A stretch of DNA of 62,756 bases, the filler included, from Hyphochytrium catenoides (taxonomy: Eukaryota; Protista; Hyphochytriomycota): NCBI GenBank assembly GCA_900088475.1. It is 8 parts of 8 records of this genome, joined end to end, with 100 filler letters (N's around TTAATTAATTAA, not from the genome) between each part and the next. Parts side by side here need not be neighbours in the genome. Positions count along the whole stretch, not along the records: positions 1 to 7,908 come from FLMG01002200.1; 7 more parts are not named here. The stretch is one strand, 5' to 3'. The stretch's first letter is position 1. Each line of letters begins with the position of its first letter. Positions 1 through 7,952 of this stretch are shown here, one piece after another. A program made the position numbers and the translations under genes. The notes beneath the pieces are model-generated. The model was not told the origin of the DNA. It made no database searches and saw only the letters and a program-made list of their open reading frames with translations.

Positions 1-998
1 TTTATGGCTTATGGTCAGTACCCCGGAATACCTTCAAGACTGACCTTTCTAGACAGGGATCTCTCTATGAATGAATATCTTAGGGTTCATTAGGAATAGT
101 TGGCATAGTTAGAATAGCTCTAGGAGGCCGTCCGCCTAAGTTTCAACGAAATTATCAAAGTTTCGTCCGATTGTCCCACTTTTGGGGATGGGACATTCAA
201 CCCTGTGATGGGGTTTCCAACGCACTGGTAGAAGAACCAGAACGGAGTGAAAGGTCTTCAGTTGCCAGCTTTCTTGCCTCATTTTATAAAGCCTGAGAAA
301 AGCGAGAATGATGAAGAGAAGACAGAAGAAGCAACGAATTAGAGTACGATGGGAAAAAATAGCGATGCGTCAGGAAGATTACTCCTCTAACTTCCTTCCT
401 CAGTTCGCCTCGCCTCTTCTATTCTATTCTTCTTAGGAAACCGGCATGACGACAGATCGCCACCTATATAAGCTTCCTCTTCTCTCATCTCCTCCTGCTC
501 TGCTCCCACATCTCCTTTCCTGCTGCTGTTCCCAATTCTCCTGCTGCTGCTCCCACGTCGCTTCTCTTACGGTCATCATCTCTTACGGTCATCATCATCA
601 TTCCAGTTGCAGCTGCTGCAGCATTGATTGAGCACTAACAAACCTGGAAGACCAACCATGAAGATTAAGAAGGTCGATGATGATCATCTTGCTAAGAGGG
701 AGTATAATACATAGAGCTCTTCTACTGCTAAGTGAAGCGGTACTACTCTTGTAGGAGAGGTTATCTGTACGAGACGAGACTGAACAAATACTATGAGGAG
801 GAGGAGATGATGGCAGGAGGACGAAAAGGGCTGCTTGTGCTTTAGCATAGATTAGCATAATAGGAACTTAGAAATCAGGATAGACTATACGTTGGCTGTC
901 CTCCGACAATCCACCATCATTAGGAGATTGCTGTCCACCGGCATCCTCTTCACCAAACGCATTCGTCCTCTTCTGTTATTCCATGGAAGCCATCTTCT

Positions 999-3900
999 CT
1001 AAGCTCTCTTCCGTCTGCTGCTTCCGCTGCTTTGTTCGTCATGCCCTCCACTGAACTCACCGTCCCCACCTTGTTGGCCACTCCTACTTATCTTCTTCGC
1101 TTTCCTGGTCTTCGCCAAGTAACTAAACTTGGCCTTTATTTGGATGACAGTTAGAAGAAGCTTTCTTGAATACAGCCCTTGGCTCTGGTTGAAGCGTGCT
1201 TTCATTCTCTTCTGCGCCTCTTCTGGTGAGATAACGTTCTGCTTCGGGTCAGTAAGATGGAGGTTGAACATCTTCTCCAGAAAGTTCAGCTGCTGTGTCG
1301 TGAACCTGGAAAACTTGCGCTCCCGTTTCACGTATCTGCCCATTCCGTCCAATTCATTCTTCCTGCTCTCTTCGTTTTCTTCTTGTTTCCTGATCAGGGG
1401 ATGAAGGAGGCATTGGCATTAGTGGAGGGAGAAAAAGAGGCGCATAGAGATGATATCTCCTCAAGCGGCTATACCTTTGCACATTGGAGTAGAGGGGTCT
1501 TGCCTTATCCCGTTCTTCGGCCCTATGATGTCTCGTATCGGTCTTCTTCTGCTGCTTGAACTTCTTCTCATGGGCAAGTGACAAACCTTCCTCCTGGTCC
1601 TCCGTTTCCTTCAAATTATTCGAAGGTCCTTCTCGAACATCAAACCGCGCCGTTGTTGCTTCGTCCTTCCTCCTCCTCTTTCGTGACGAAGAGAGGGGGG
1701 GAGAATCTTCTAACGACGATGGTCGTTGTCCGAAGAAGGACTCCTCAATAGATGGCTGCTGTTTCGTCCTCTCTGCAGAGTGTAAAGGAATGAAAGCAGG
1801 GTAGTTAGTGTTCAAGGTCAGAATGACAGCAAACCCAGGCGTTATAGATGGAGCGAGAACGAGCATAGGCAGATTTTACCTCCGCTTGCTGTAGACCTAC
1901 TTCTGCCGGTCGACTTGCTACTCTTGTTCTTGGCAGTGGCTGTCTTTGTGCTCTCAGCTCTTTCCTTCTTGTCCTTTCTCTGCTGCTGGCATGGCAAGCA
2001 AGAGCCAATAGGAGGCTCATCTCGGCCGACGTCGTTGATATGGGTAATGCTGATCGTTGAGTCATAGTGGTCGTTCCCTCTCAAAAGGACAATAACCTTT
2101 GGCCAAACCGAACCGATAGCTGTTCTAATCCTCGTATCAGTAGATGGCTGGCACCCATAGGAAGCTAGCGGTGTGCTTCCAATATCGATCACAGAAGGAG
2201 ATGATTGTCCTGCTATGCGATTGTAGATCTTGAGCCCCACACCGTAAGTAGCAGCAAGGATGGTAGGCATAAGGTCGCCGATAGGAGTGGAATAGAATGT
2301 CTCTATCTTGTCAAAGATGGTAAACATACGGGTCAAGAACGTATCCTGTTCTTCCATTCCAAGCTTTGCAAGACCACCTTCAGTTATTTTGTCATTACAG
2401 AACCTCCACAGTGCTTCTTGGTTGGTACCCGTATATGCTTTGAGGTCAAGAAGAAGATCCGCATAGGGTAAGGACTCTGAAGAAGGATGAAGATCATCCG
2501 CCCACTGTAATCCATTAAGAAAAGCAACAAAAAGACAACGACCATCCGGTGGACAGAGATATCGAAGTCGTTTAGAGTCCCCAAAAAGTAACTCTTGAGG
2601 AACGTGCTGAAAGCACACCTTGTTTCTGTCGACCCTCGCAGGAAGCGATATTGAAGGGCCACCTTCAGAAGATGGACGGTCTGGTGTCATCATGTGCTCC
2701 TCAGGAATGAGAACGTCGTAATGGTTGCGCTCCCTCCAAAGGAGGACAATGCTGGCGGTAGGAACTTGCCGAAGAAACCCCAGCTTGTCCGCACTGGCGC
2801 CATGTAATGGACGCGCTACGGCTCTCATCGCTGGCTTCAAGTGATTTTGGCCTCCTCTATTAGCATTGGAGGAAATATTCTTCGTTGTAGGCTCTCTACG
2901 GTAGACCGTGATAGCGTTGATTACCTGATCGTCAGAGTTATCCATCTGCAGAACTATAACAGGTCTATGGGGGAAAAGGATGCTGAAGACTCTGATTGTG
3001 TCATCCGTTCCCCATCCTTCCTGGCCAACAGTGGTTGTAGAAGTTTGACAGTAGCGCCTTGCGTACGTTGTATATACCCTTCGGGCCTCGGGAGTATCTG
3101 GCGCCACAGGGCGAGCCCCCCTGACAGATTCTATGTACTTCGGCCCGCAAGTCTCGCGGAACCAGGACATATTCCGTAATAGGAACTCGCTAGTAATGCA
3201 TCGCAACGCCACCCAGGATAAATGCTCGGTTTTTGCAGATGAGAGACCTACTGCAAGGGCTCTAGCTTGGCAGTACCCATCCCCTGGGATTAAGGTCACC
3301 TTTCGTGCCAATGCCTTCTCAATTGAGGAGAGAGTGAGGGGTAGTAGTCTGCGCTCTTCTTCCTGAGGGGAGACATCTCCATAAAAGTTCCTCAGCTTGA
3401 TTGGCAGCCCAGAGCCTGAGCCTGCCGTTGGTTCCGCCGCCGGCTGCTCACCACTGGAGGTGCCAAATGTAGCATTGTCTGCCTCCTTCCAATAAGTCTC
3501 CTCCTTATCAAAGGCAGAGGACGAAGACCTCTGCTTCTCGTCAGTCACTTCCTGGTTGCTGCCAGCGACAGGGAGATCTCCTTGCGGGGTGGGCCCACCG
3601 GCAGGGGACTGTGAAAAATACTGCCGCTTATACTCCGCCGGTTCCACAGGGCTAGATCGAAGGGACTCTAAACAAGCAATCAAACTGATTAGGTTATTTC
3701 TACGAGAAGGAGATCTAACTGAAAAATATAGTGTGCATTCTGCCACATACCTGAGAAGACTTGGGGGTCTATCTTCATGGGCACACCTCTGAACTCACTT
3801 CCCCAGTACCGCTCCAGCTCGTCCCATGGTTTGAAAAGGCCCTCACCGATGTCGCGACTACGAAAGAACCGTATCCCTTTGCATGTCCTCCCCTCCCCAT

Positions 3901-6900
3901 TGCTATCATACTCATAGCGACGGCAGTGATACATCGACAGATGTGTCATAGGGGAGTATGTCCGCTTTTCCTCCCTGTCAACCTTCAGCTGGTAGTTGAT
4001 AGAGTTCTCCTTGGCGGACTCATCCAAGACAGCTATTACGTCCTTCGGATGGACAACATCCTTCCCACCGGAGTTAACAGCTCTCTTGATCTGCTGAGAA
4101 ATGGTCCCAAAGTCACTGTCGGCACAACAGTCTGCATCAGAAAATAAGCCTTCAACAAGTGAGGTAATAATAAGCCTTTAACAAGTGAGGTACGACTGAT
4201 GGTCACTGAGAAAAAAAAGAAGCTATCTGAAGGACGACTCACCCATCGCACTTGTTTTTTCCTCCTCCAGCTTCCGAGATATTATGCTCAAGGACGGTAA
4301 CACCAACATCTAAGGCAGCATAAGGAAGTCCTAGCATGAAAGCCGTGCAGCTAAAGTTGGATACCCCGTCCGACTGAAGAATGACCTCAGTCAGCTTATC
4401 ACCCAGCTCCATCTTGATCTGCTCTAGCACTGAGATGATGCAATACAATGATTGTACCCAGTCCTGCTTTGTTGAGTCCGGTACCGCTCTGCAGTAGAAA
4501 ACCTTGCAGACATCGTCGTCTTTGTTCATATTCAACGCGCATTGCCAAAGCGCAGGGAAAATGCAAGATGACAGCACGTGCGAGAGCCAGAACGGTTAGT
4601 AAAAGCATCGACGACGTAAAGATAGAAGAAGAAGACGTGTAAGAGGCAAACCAGTAACAGCCCCTTCTAATTCTTCTTACCCTCGACGAAGAGGACGTAA
4701 GCTCCGAATAGGCTGAGTCCCTTCTTGCCATAGTGTTCTGATTGTGTTTCCCTATGCTAGAAGATGGAAAGTTCAGCGGCAGTGCCAAGCAGCAGTCTGT
4801 TATCTACTGCACTGTGGTACATCCCTATCACCACTTTCCAACTCACCTTAGTCATCAAAATCTTCATCTTATGATCGAATATGATAAAGGCTTGGCCTTT
4901 CTTGAGCTTCTCTACGATGGAGCGTTGTGCGAGAAGCGAAAATGCCTTCCTCGCTAGATGAGCAATGTATTTGTCAATGGTCTCTATACAAAGCGAGAAC
5001 TCTTCCCTAAGGCTCTCTAGCTCATCCAGCTCCTCCCCTTTGCAGTTGACATCACCCCTGTTGCTACCGGCAACAGCGCTAAAGAAGGCAAGAACTTCCT
5101 TCTCAAAGGTAAAGCGGCGCTGACAGCTATTGGCCACCAGGGTGTCATAGAAAAGATGGCTTTAGTAACCAGTGGTCAGATGGCAAAGCCACAAGGGCAA
5201 TACAGGTGAGATTGAAAGAGTGAGTATGGAGGTGAGCAAATAGAATATTGGATACTCAAATTCGAAAGTGGGAGTAAGAGCGACTGAGACAAGAAGAGGA
5301 TGGAGAATCAGTGGAGGACGGAGAAGCGAACGGATCCTACCCCTAAGCAGAAGTCAGATAAAAGAGACCGACCAGGAGAGATTATTGTAGGGGAAGATAG
5401 AGAGGGAGGGTATTCAACTCACTCTACGTCGTCGAGAGGGTGCTCGTGATCGCATTTTTTTCTTAGTAGCGCGTCTTTCGGCATAGAGAGACAATACTGA
5501 AGACAGAGGAGCTTGCTTGGGTCCGTTTGTTTGAGCCTTTGACGAAAGTCAAACTTGTAGTGTCTTGACATTTTTATCAGGTCATGTTTAAAGGTTGCTA
5601 CCTTAGCAGGATTGTATTGCATCAACTTGTCCAGGATTCCTTCAATGACCTTAATGCTCGCTATTCCCTGTACAGGTAAAGGAAGCGCAGCGCTTAGTAA
5701 TGAAGAGCCGCTGACAGCTGTGGTCAGAACTCTTACATCGTCACAGTTACTGCATAAGGAGTCCATCCTCTTCTTGTCCTTCCACTGTGGATGCTGCTTT
5801 ACGTATTCGTAGAACTTTGTCCTACCAACGGCGCTTTCGTCGATGTCCTGGCCAGTTTCCTTCAGCTTTTCCATGAAGGCGCGATATAAACTAGCAGTGT
5901 GAGACGCCTTATAAAGTACATCGGTGGTAGGAGACGGCGTCAAAATTCCTTCGGTCGCAAAGAAAGTTTCCAATGCCTGCCTCTTTGTAGCGCTTAGCCT
6001 GACGCGCGTGAACTTCTTACGTTCGACTTTGCTTCCCGGTCCCTTCTCTCTCGTATGGAGGCGAGCCAGGTATATTTGATATGTAGTGACTTTGAAAAGC
6101 TCACGCGTGTCCTCATAGCGGAAAGCTGGTGCGAAGATGGATAGGAGCTGCCGTTTCTCCCATTTGTCCGTAGTCCTTTCGTAAGCTCCCACAAACAGGC
6201 GTAAGAATTCCCTGTATCGCTTCGCAATATCTGGATTATTCGGGCTGACACTGAACTTTACTAGAAGCTCTCGAATATCATCCGCATGCAGAAGCTTCCC
6301 GGCATGTGCTGGATGGGAGAGAATCTCCCGCATCAGGCCGGCTGAATCTTTAGGGCATATTTTGTCGAGAATGGCTCTAAGAAAGTTAGCCGCCGCCGCG
6401 GACAGGTCGTACCTCCTGCTGCGACTTAGCGATTGGAGATTGTTGGTCAATGATCTGACTAGTGGTGATGCTAGGTGCAGGTCTTCTTCATCATGCCGAA
6501 GAAGCCTTGCGACCTCCTCATGGCCAAAGCCGCACAATCTCCTTCCTTGTCTCAGCAGTGAGAATGCACCCGGGTCTACATCAAACGCCTTAGCCACGGA
6601 GAGCCAGAGTTTCATGGCCGTGGAATGGCCTTCCCGCCCTATTTCTACTTCAATTATGCGCCGGTAGGCCTTTGGATGGACAACCCTCGCACGAAATAAT
6701 GGCCCGCCAGCGAAGGCACTTCTTTCGTCGAGGAGCATCGTCACGGACCATTCAATGGTCACGAACGCGGATTTTACGAGGACCCCAGGAGGAAGAGTTG
6801 TAAGAGCTGTCAGTCCATCCCGAAGATGGATCTCAGGTAGACCTCTTGCTGCCTTTATAATCCAGTCTGGATGATCAACCATAACACCAAGGTTTGTGAA

Positions 6901-7479
6901 GCTGATTCTTGCACCTTTGTATGTATGCTCTCTATTCATGGCAGCAACTAGAGGCCTAAGTATCATAGTCTAAGAGGCAAAAAATACAAAGAATAAAGAA
7001 GCATTAATAAGGATTCAGGGGGAAAAGGAGATAGTCGATTGGCATTACCTGCCTCAAGGGATGGGCCTTGCTATCGTTGTTACCTCTGTCCGCTGTGCTA
7101 CGAAGAAGAAAATGTGCAGCGGTACTCCTACGGAGCGCTGTAACGGCGTTCTCTACTTTGCTGATAAAGGAGTCCATCCTAGACCTCCTGTCTCGTGAGA
7201 AAGAGCCTTGCATGTACCTGGCGATGGTGGTCTTATGGAGCCTGACGCCTGTTATCTGATGGAGTGTATTCAGGAAGGTCCGGACACCGCTCTGCCTTTC
7301 ACCGGTAATCCTCGCCTCCAGGAACTTAAGTACGCGCTGATCCCTAGGATCTGATATTACTCCACTAGTAGCAGGTGGCGATACCGGGGACGAGGGAGAA
7401 ATAGGAGGTGTTGAGATGGGATGCTGCTCTGTTGTGCTAGCATCTGAGAGTGAAGACTCGCTTTCTTGCTCAGTAGGCT
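999..7479 (-). CDS. Sola3-like DDD transposase with two in-frame OTU cysteine-protease domains (about 1,790 aa or more, 10 or more exons)
   Basis: Hand-built GT-AG exon chain: 7479-7049, 6969-5737, 5667-5423, 5126-4847, 4756-4681, 4519-4243, 4115-3751, 3667-1880, 1772-1475, 1389-999. All splice phases are compatible and the chain ends on TAG at 999-1001. Motifs in order: KRQLLSIFA..ARLH..GPG, CSNC, CDHEH, FDHKMK|HRETQSEHYGKKGLS, KQDW, LQSDG, ISEAGGGKNKCDG|DFGT..NSGGKDV, IRFFRSRDIGEG, [OTU x2], RFTTQQLNFLEKMF..LTVIQIKAKFS. These match the Sola3 pattern as I recall it (DWAMK..RESQ..FGKRG, SDNA, SE.Q.GK..CDR, RF...Q..L..F..QI..FSR). A likely extra exon lies at 7554 and above; the true start is unresolved. 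Confidence 0.8.
2055..2570 (-). other. OTU domain 2 within the transposase
   Basis: Cys loop CPPDGRCLFVAF (Cys codon 2535-2537), IGDLMPTILA..YGVGLKIY, His loop GNDHYDS (His codon 2067-2069). Confidence 0.85.
2710..3300 (-). other. OTU domain 1 within the transposase
   Basis: Cys loop IPGDGYCQARAL (Cys codon 3270-3272), WGTDDTI variable loop, His loop RNHYDVL (His codon 2721-2723). Confidence 0.85.
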
Positions 7480-7952
7480 CTGTATTGTCGTCATAGGTAG
7501 GAGAAGACCCATTCAGTCGTTGTGCCACCACTCTATGTATTCAAAACCCTTACCTATTATAAGCTGTCTTTTACCCGCAGAAGGACAGCCAACTGGCACA
7601 GAAGGGCCGAAGAAAGAACTCAAGAGTGGTTGTGTCTTCCTTTTTCCTGGTCCATCATTCGCCTTTAGCAATGAAGGGACACTCTCTGCGCTAAAAACAG
7701 TTCGAGGTTCCTCAGGAGCCACCGAAGATCATATGTCTTCAGAGGTAGTAGCAGCTCCTTCTGTCCCTTCTTCATGTATAACCACGCGCTGACGGCTGGG
7801 GTGAACGTTGTTAGGAGTAGTAGTAGTATCACCTTCCTTGTTACTTGGGTCAGGACACAGGGGTGCTCTTTCATCACCATCTCCTTCTTCCCTTTCTCGA
7901 AACGACGANNNNNNNNNNNNNNNNNNNNNNNNNNNNNNNNNNNNNNNNNNNN

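Follow-up and report, generated by a model that had tools for sequence, protein, structure and literature searches.

Domains of the OTU or Ulp1 type are established on Ginger1, Helitron/Helentron and Mutator transposons, with Ulp1 known from Mutator and Ginger1 (PMC2836005, PMC9741609). Ginger1 transposases carry an OTU or Ulp1 domain at their C-terminus (Bao, Kapitonov and Jurka 2010, PMC2836005), and the proteins of Helitrons and Helentrons carry OTU and/or VTD deubiquitinase (DUB) domains (PMC2836005, PMC9741609, PMC4067079). Tandem DUB domains are found in Helentrons, zebrafish DrT1 having two of the VTD type, and VTD occurs together with OTU in many Helitrons (PMC9741609). A Helitron VTD domain has been the subject of biochemical and structural work in which an 'active' VTD was described, and transposon OTU domains have, according to the same source, never been assayed (PMC9741609). 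Ubiquitin-removal roles have been proposed for both the Ginger1 OTU/Ulp1 domains and the Helitron DUB domains (PMC2836005, PMC9741609), and such a proposal extends to the protease domains of Mutator elements. Here we describe a gene from the protist Hyphochytrium catenoides (assembly GCA_900088475.1) in a window of 62,756 nucleotides, made up of eight parts of this genome joined with filler. The gene lies in the first part, positions 1-7908 (FLMG01002200.1), and is read on the minus strand, which carries every long open frame listed for this piece. We think it probable that it encodes a Sola3-superfamily cut-and-paste transposase, or a very recent derivative of one, in whose lineage an exon with two OTU-like units was acquired that would act as deubiquitinases.

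Sola3 DNA transposons were reportedly described by Bao, Jurka, Kapitonov and Jurka in 2009. They correspond to group E.13 of the RNase H-like superfamily, with Sola3-1_HM (Hydra) and C. remanei CRE_08425 as exemplars (PMC3985635). The core of Sola3-1_HM is printed as ...KDYCQKVLPSKFREGQKEYFGKKGMSLH ... LYAKSDNASSYH ... YDYNEPCRGKD, with the motifs GKKGMSLH, KSDNASSY and NEPCRGKD, and that of CRE_08425 as ...MDWSQKVIPMQ..PQSDFYGKSGISVH ... HLRSDNAGCYH ... FTFSEAQGGK (PMC3985635 supplement). The core signatures of Sola1 are SDNCGGQNRN and GHT, and those of Sola2 are DFAENY, TDGCAGQYKN and SHG (PMC3985635 supplement). Sola, Zator, Kolobok and some other superfamilies are without a Pfam model, the alignments of Majorek et al. 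2014 having been used in its place, and among fungi Sola3 has been reported solely from Rhizophagus (PMC5751038).

Transposase core and relatives

The gene was assembled from nine exons, A to I in transcript order (Table 1). Judged by its motifs and by transitive homology, and with the fold predicted from a relative, it is a Sola3-type DDD transposase. The core in the window reads ...FDHKMKILMTKHRETQSEHYGKKGLSLFG ... ILQSDGVSNFS ... HNISEAGGGKNKCD. In a comparison made by eye from the published supplement, and not by a scored profile, its motifs GKKGLSLFG, QSDGVSNFS and SEAGGGKNKCD match the Sola3 patterns GKKG(M/L)SL, SD(N/G).S..(Y/F) and E..GGK, and the core differs from the signatures of both Sola1 and Sola2. 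Three acidic columns, D(H/Y/W), SD(G/N) and GK...D, are conserved throughout the family in alignment A2 and are present in exons C and E, where they give the catalytic triad D775, D860 and D901.

Relatives were sought with HMMER by comparing exon B with 1.84 billion representative proteins, which returned 40 matches at E<=1e-3. The longer ones are P0031 (JGI metagenome), P0013 (ENA metagenome), P0022 and P0037 (both from Cymbomonas tetramitiformis), P0012 (Branchiostoma belcheri) and P0032 (Saccostrea echinata); exon B is aligned with relatives in alignments A3-A5 as well. The Sola3 link is transitive, in that the gene is homologous to P0032, which has LRSDNAGCYH and SEAQSGK exactly and shares the first of these motifs with CRE_08425. 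Sola3-type relatives as a whole occur in cnidarians, molluscs, amphioxus and green algae.

The same relatives bear on the splicing of the gene. In BLASTP comparisons whose E-values refer to a local database and not to the whole library, residues 235-1009 of the spliced protein align with P0031 across four introns without a break at any of them (E 9e-49), residues 353-975 with P0013 (E 1e-41), residues 341-1000 with P0022 (E 2e-25) and residues 427-1061 with P0032 (E 5e-27, as against 3.6e-4 for exon B in the whole library), while an alignment of residues 70-554 with P0025 spans the A/B junction. The peptide of the 76-nt exon D, HRETQSEHYGKKGLSLFG, pairs with HHEAQSEGFGKRGLSIFG of P0031 and is contiguous in the intron-free P0031, P0013 and P0032; its counterpart in Sola3-1_HM is REGQKEYFGKKGMSLH (PMC3985635 supplement). 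Because the alignment to intron-free relatives is unbroken, exons A-F, the 76-nt exon included, are confirmed by homology.

Two further outcomes of the searches with exon B should be recorded. The third match, P0003 (1,263 aa), consists of repeats of about 40 residues with 10 short stretches matching exon B, and looks like an artefact of composition and repeats rather than a relative. A word-indexed protein search with exon B gave no matches, its length window and 5-mer requirement probably masking distant relatives.

The fold of the core was modelled with AlphaFold2 on the relative P0031 (residues 765-1120, 33% identical to the window in the core) from a ten-row alignment. The model (mean pLDDT 69, pTM 0.63) has the order β1-β2-β3-α-β4-α-β5-α, and its three aspartates are placed on β1, where β4 ends and where the following helix begins. 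Foldseek against the Protein Data Bank (PDB) found a PIWI domain and retroviral integrase cores, and VIA-align gave Z 8.0-8.4 over 132-152 residues for the ASV, HTLV and RSV integrase cores and the IstA transposase, and Z 7.7 over 165 residues for the Mos1 mariner transposase. Against the AlphaFold DB clusters, Foldseek matched uncharacterised eukaryotic proteins (E 4e-17 to 3e-11), several of them labelled as C2H2-domain proteins. Some of these neighbours are presumably from Glomeromycotina, going by the prefixes of their UniProt accessions. Consistent with the motifs and with homologues that hold exact Sola3 motifs, this RNase H-like fold of a relative sustains the proposal of the first-pass annotation that the gene is a Sola3-like DDD transposase.

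A structure atlas placed the core closest to cnidarian and mollusc clusters, followed by DUF7869, ISAzo13 and IS630 transposases, and in the ESM Atlas exon E lay nearest to clusters of DUF7869-type transposases (score 0.94, 207 shared features). Membership in DUF7869 was rejected, as that Pfam model has no match and the motifs fit Sola3 and not the Sola1-like pattern. Pfam scans of the window exons and of ten relatives gave no relevant match, only weak chance matches, such as to DUF5952 and FtsX_ECD, on exons or sub-domains; for the core, this absence is explained by the Sola superfamilies having no Pfam model (PMC5751038).

The OTU-like exon and its position

Exon G comprises 596 codons and holds two DGxC...HYD units. 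Unit 1 runs LIPGDGYCQARALAVGL (Cys1156) ... GWGTDDTIRVFSILFPHRPVIVL ... IVLLWRERNHYDVLI (His1339, Asp1341), and unit 2 runs LCPPDGRCLFVAFLNGL (Cys1401) ... IGDLMPTILAATYGVGLKIY ... VIVLLRGNDHYDSTI (His1557, Asp1559). Each therefore presents a Cys box, a middle (W)G.D..I motif and a His-x-Asp box in the canonical order, with 186 aa between the Cys and His boxes of unit 1 (DGYC 1153 to HYD 1339) and 159 aa between those of unit 2 (DGRC 1398 to HYD 1557). The His and Asp of HYD would correspond to residues of the catalytic triad of yeast Otu1.

When exon G was shuffled 100,000 times and scored for ordered DGxC...HY[DN] pairs at a spacing of 100-230 aa, one pair was found in 17 of the shuffles and two pairs in none. 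Among the 100 nearest named clusters of exon G in the ESM Atlas, 93 are PF02338 OTU (134-158 shared features), at scores of 0.83-0.89 where anything under 0.9 rates as a lead only. When a profile built from both units was run against 177,635 PDB sequences, it had a single match, the OTU domain of OTUD3 (4BOU), which is not significant (E 1.3) and in which both boxes align (PGDGNCLFRAL, GEHYDSV). From these results we are fairly confident that the units have an OTU fold. We nevertheless call them "OTU-like", and do not file them as members of the OTU cysteine proteases (Pfam PF02338, MEROPS C85), because the Pfam OTU model gives no match and the fold prediction failed. Of the two OTU domains that had been proposed for this exon, the motif sets are thus borne out and the family assignment by profile is not (PF02338 unmatched to E 10; OTUD3 in PDB at E 1.3). 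Homologues of exon G or of OTU unit 2 were absent from word-indexed protein searches, which carry the length-window and 5-mer limit mentioned above, and from a metagenome scan.

The exon stands between two parts that the family conserves. Downstream of it, exon I encodes ...RFTTQQLNFLEKMF...QIKAKFSYLAKTRK, and the same C-terminal domain ends P0022 and P0037 (...Q(I/V)TSWFSRR) and P0012 (QITSFFARL). It also occurs in frames 3' of the core in two related loci, L001 (QIKSWFSSEKRRR) and L009 (QIKAWFGSEKARRK), and is aligned across these five relatives in alignment A6. With tblastn the domain was recovered in related loci (E 0.016-0.017), 3' of the core, where it would be expected. A profile built from A6 matched PDB entries weakly (E 0.02-7), mostly at helix 3 of homeodomains (MATalpha2, PRH, Nkx3.1, GBX-1, engrailed), and Pfam had no match to the domain. 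The distance from core to C-terminal domain is about 600 nt (200 aa) in L009 and about 680 nt in L001, with a C2H2-like finger lying between core and tail in L001, P0031, P0022 and P0032. The window gene has about 700 extra residues there, contributed by exon G and the low-complexity exon H.

None of the relatives resembles the window gene in this respect. No OTU was seen between core and tail among the 40 related proteins and 10 related loci, the ten loci lack an OTU-like motif pair in all their frames, and residues 1024-1619 of the spliced protein align with no relative in the local BLASTP. A metagenome scan based on A5 returned nine related loci, none with an OTU. Because relatives have a short segment at this place and none has an OTU, the pair would be a lineage-specific insertion, acquired in the lineage of the window and kept in frame. 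This agrees with the earlier claim that the OTU pair sits between two conserved transposase parts, here the core and a QIK..(W)F(S) tail that OTU-less relatives share.

Four of the metagenome contigs (L005-L008), from several metagenomes, are 97-99.9% identical to one another and show the N-terminal domain followed by the core, the members that reach beyond the core being without an OTU. They are probably one organism sampled repeatedly and are uninformative on copy number. In L001, the contig of P0013, the finger and a QIKSWFS domain lie at 3815-4945 in a frame other than that of the called 1,129-aa gene, whose end it overlaps; this suggests that the metagenomic copy contains a frameshift or an intron missed in annotation.

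That the units belong to the same polypeptide as the transposase is suggested by phase-consistent GT-AG sites on both sides of exon G, by the conserved tail downstream and by the reading frame of the exon, in which no ATG precedes the first Cys box. For this last reason exon G is not an independent gene as it stands.

Gene model, copies and rival explanations

A number of results count against the reading offered here, and each is given together with the explanation that it would favour. The first concern the identity of the two units. Neither exon G nor either unit has a match to PF02338 up to E 10, which is how the Pfam OTU check proposed in the first-pass annotation came out; NCBIfam and PHROGs have none to the OTU parts, again up to E 10; and phmmer with exon G found nothing in PDB. 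AlphaFold2 of the OTU region, run without an alignment, produced an unusable model (mean pLDDT 32, pTM 0.21). The units also resemble each other weakly, at about 25% identity and E 0.047, and on these figures a recent tandem duplication was rejected as the origin of the pair. It could accordingly be argued that the units are not functional OTU proteases, being either chance or degenerate look-alikes or pseudo-enzymes that serve as ubiquitin-binding or spacer modules, an argument to which the lack of a significant profile match in four databases, the failed fold prediction and Atlas scores below the lead-only line all lend weight. We regard this as unlikely, since both units keep the three motifs in canonical order and at OTU-like spacing, the paired arrangement never arose by shuffling, the single match among all PDB sequences is to an OTU domain, with both boxes in alignment, and OTU clusters dominate the Atlas neighbourhood.

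The second group concerns the link between the core and its additions. The comparison with the Sola3 references was visual, as noted above; for the junctions F/G, G/H and H/I, the support comes from canonical sites and reading phase and not from homologues; and the inclusion of exon G in the messenger RNA (mRNA) is likewise inferred from its phase-consistent GT-AG sites. The OTU exon could then be outside the main transposase mRNA, whether skipped, nested or separately transcribed, with an OTU-less Sola3 transposase as the usual product. Exon G is indeed symmetric (phase 1-1, 1,788 nt), so that an F-to-H join would leave the frame unchanged and could yield an OTU-less isoform, and the relatives work without such an exon. 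However, its acceptor and donor are canonical and in the right phase, all 596 codons are open on the transposase strand, no ATG stands before the first catalytic Cys, base composition and codon use are like those of the other exons, and two intact Cys/His/Asp sets would be unexpected in an exon that is purely skipped, which together make this explanation quite improbable. On composition, exon G has a GC content of 0.51, with 0.47-0.52 for the remaining exons, and the same GC3 (0.51) as exons A and B; the idea that the OTU exon is foreign in composition was accordingly rejected.

The third group concerns mobility. DNA runs of the source organism (X1-X3) contain the sequence, and rhizosphere, soil and sediment metagenomes contain small parts of it. 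Depth was taken from assembled contigs of the DNA runs aligned with positions 1-6000 and is a rough guide. The gene body (1546-6000) has a flat depth of 21-22 in X1 and 221-237 in X2, close to single copy. A search of 1-7908 gave no convincing terminal inverted repeats, its best pair (697-716 / 7531-7550, 20 nt, 80%) being at chance level; target-site duplications were not seen in the piece either, nor terminal inverted repeats in the related loci. An in-frame ATG for the 5' end of the gene was not found either, also when the frame at 7728-7554 was included. An ATG ATG at 7658/7655 misses the frame by one base. It stands directly 5' of an A5 run, and either a genuine frameshift or a sequencing error in the homopolymer may account for the offset.

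Other parts of the piece behave differently from the gene body. Positions 293-1575 have about twice its depth and occur in two versions that differ by clusters of single-nucleotide polymorphisms and by indels of 8, 11 and 16 nt, which implies a second, diverged copy of only the 3' end of the gene and its 3' flank. Extra depth is also seen at 3201-3400, around the first OTU Cys box, and in one X2 contig a stretch that differs from 6569-6598 by one mismatch runs straight into 3243; this 6598->3243 junction points to another place in the genome at which there is either a partial, rearranged copy or the junction of a tandem duplication. Rearranged or truncated pieces of the gene thus appear to be present at other sites, which a decaying transposon family would be expected to show, with one full copy visible. 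The de Bruijn contigs break at about 1546-1575. In the 3' flank, two perfect copies of a 16-nt unit lie at 563-594, one of which is missing from X1 and X3 contigs.

At the left edge, 3-123 is a very high-copy repeat, with a summed contig word depth of 15,248 in X1 and 167,905 in X2, about 700 times that of the gene. Its loose ends run past the left edge of the piece and it is also present on a rhizosphere-metagenome contig; a tRNA- or Rfam-related feature was rejected for want of a match. Because the left edge falls inside this repeat, the ends of the element may lie outside the piece. An exact look-up of the product of the 515-aa open reading frame, aimed at DNA past the edges of the piece, found no record of it.

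These observations are where a domesticated host gene has to be weighed, that is, an immobilised former Sola3 transposase fused to two OTU units and serving, for example, as a DNA-bound deubiquitinase. A flat, roughly single-copy gene body in both DNA runs, an intact frame of 1,848 codons over eight introns, the lack of terminal inverted repeats in the piece, and the fact that the OTU-bearing form was found nowhere else in the protein and metagenome searches made would all suit such a gene. Less compatible with it are the retention of all three catalytic aspartates, the partial, diverged and rearranged copies in the same genome (293-1575, 3201-3400, 6598->3243), which are typical of a decaying transposon family, and the missing start codon, which would be odd in a maintained host gene. 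Depth in the gene body is also about half that seen over its 3' flank, which would fit presence on one haplotype or as a single copy. We give domestication a small chance and rate a transposon gene above it, on data that do not decide between the two.

The gene model on which this assessment is based joins nine exons into 5,547 nt, or 1,848 codons and a stop, with no internal stops. All eight introns are GT..AG and measure 79-263 nt, and the acceptor of intron 4, the first AG 3' of a CTAAC box, is the sole in-phase acceptor nearby. Intron 5 holds a 26-nt tandem duplication (4143-4192). The first-pass annotation had joined eight fragments and a 76-nt exon into one frame of about 1,790 aa; the single frame and the small exon hold, and the protein is longer, at 1,828-1,848 aa plus a possible 5' exon. 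Its upstream limit of 7479 proves to be an acceptor site, and the frame extends further 5', either to 7540 or, through a 74-nt GT-AG intron (7553-7480) that connects 7479 in phase, to the open frame 7728-7554. That exon is tentative because it has no significant similarity to the N-termini of relatives. The junctions given earlier for 3751/3667, 1880/1772 and 1475/1389 are identical to the phase-consistent GT-AG joins found here, and the motifs FDHK, QSDG and KCDG, both DGxC/HYD sets and the C-terminal QIKAKFS were all located where that annotation had placed them.

Table 1. Exons and motifs of the Sola3-type transposase gene in positions 1-7908 of the window
Feature	Positions	Strand	Description
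Possible further 5' exon	7554..7728	-	Tentative; in-phase 74-nt GT-AG intron; no significant similarity to relatives' N-termini
Exon A	7049..7540	-	Ser/Pro-rich stretch, then helix-turn-helix-like segment RTFLNTLHQITGV at 7282-7244
Exon B	5423..6969	-	Family-specific N-terminal domain; KRQLLSxFAP motif; Cys/His clusters CSNC (5754-5743) and CDHEH (5454-5440)
Exon C	4847..5159	-	Long helix, then first predicted catalytic Asp (FDHK, 4879-4868)
Exon D (76 nt)	4681..4756	-	Peptide HRETQSEHYGKKGLSLFGAYVLFVE, with Sola3 signature GKKG(L/M)SL
Exon E	4243..4519	-	Second Asp in QSDG (4376-4365); third Asp in GGGKNKCD (Asp codon 4247-4245)
KCDG motif	4243..4253	-	Final codon completed at 4115 across the intron
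Exon F	3751..4115	-	C-terminal part of catalytic domain; aligns to P0031, P0013, P0022 and P0032
Exon G (1,788 nt, phase 1-1)	1880..3667	-	Linker, OTU-like unit 1, OTU-like unit 2, basic tail
Motifs of OTU-like unit 1		-	DGYC 3281-3270; WGTDD 3014-3000; HYD 2723-2715
Motifs of OTU-like unit 2		-	DGRC 2546-2535; HYD 2069-2061
Exon H	1475..1772	-	Low-complexity acidic/basic linker; junctions from GT-AG sites and reading phase; KRRRK (1680-1666) may be a nuclear localisation signal
Exon I	999..1389	-	Homeodomain-like C-terminal domain (RF..QQLNFLEKMF ... QIKAKFS, 1142-1122); stop codon 1001-999

Proposed mechanism and comparison with known systems

Under the reading we prefer, that of a transposase with an acquired OTU-like exon, a protein of about 1,850 aa would combine a helix-turn-helix, the N-terminal domain, Cys/His clusters, an RNase H-like DDD core and a homeodomain-like tail. 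The helix-turn-helix, zinc-cluster and homeodomain-like parts may bind the element ends, and the core would cut and rejoin DNA as in other DDE/D transposases, to judge by its predicted fold and conserved residues. To this, one symmetric exon would add a diverged pair of OTU-like papain-fold units in which the Cys ... His-x-Asp sets are both intact; these most probably act as deubiquitinases that travel with the transposase. By analogy with other transposon proteases, their substrates could be the transposase itself or, where transposition takes place, chromatin or repair factors, from which they would strip ubiquitin or a ubiquitin-like modifier; this may protect the transposase from proteasomal turnover or modulate those factors. 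That the two units have diverged so strongly would be consistent with a difference in their substrate or linkage preferences, and skipping of exon G could give rise to the OTU-less form. A stronger version of this model, in which the gene belongs to an autonomous Sola3 transposon with two active OTU deubiquitinases of different specificity that counter ubiquitin-dependent degradation or silencing, is a good deal more speculative, and we think it doubtful.

We found no paper linking Sola elements with OTU domains and no relative that carries one, in line with the earlier suggestion that a double-OTU Sola3 fusion has not been described. An OTU-bearing Sola3 architecture, of which a single copy was seen, would add a transposon group to the known transposase-DUB fusions, and two intact-looking OTU-like units on a Sola3 element would represent a further, independent acquisition of DUBs. 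The insertion as a symmetric exon, together with close relatives that have no OTU, would also provide a natural comparison, with and without, of what deubiquitination is worth to a transposase. In addition, annotation is gained for a poorly covered family, in which the window exons and ten scanned relatives had no Pfam match.

The gene resembles described Sola3 transposases in the order of its motifs, D..(K/Q)K.LP, (R)E.Q.E.(F/Y)GK.G.S., SD(N/G).S/G..(Y/F) and (N/S)E..GGK/GK.D, and in an RNase H-like fold with three aspartates, predicted for the window through a relative. It differs from them in the 596-codon exon with two OTU-like units that is added between core and C-terminal domain. With cellular and viral OTUs, such as OTUD3 (4BOU), yeast Otu1 and the OTUs of giant viruses, the units share the Cys box (P)GDG.C(L)(F)xA and the His box HYD(S/V), in the same order and at OTU-like spacing, although they are embedded in a transposase and have no significant profile match.

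Among transposon proteins, Ginger1 offers a parallel in that a cut-and-paste transposase and an OTU-type cysteine protease share one reading frame, and the same functional guess has been made for it, a part for the ubiquitin pathway in transposition or later repair (PMC2836005). Ginger1, however, has a Gypsy-integrase-like DDE core and a single C-terminal OTU that is recognised by PF02338, whereas the window gene has a Sola3 DDD core and two internal units, too diverged for Pfam, upstream of a conserved tail. Helitrons likewise have transposon proteins with one or two papain-fold domains of DUB type, but theirs are rolling-circle RepHel proteins and not DDE/D transposases. Were the stronger version of our model to hold, no DUB-bearing element would have been known before the H. 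catenoides one among the DDD (Sola) transposons, and cut-and-paste, integrase-like and rolling-circle elements would each have recruited deubiquitinases independently.

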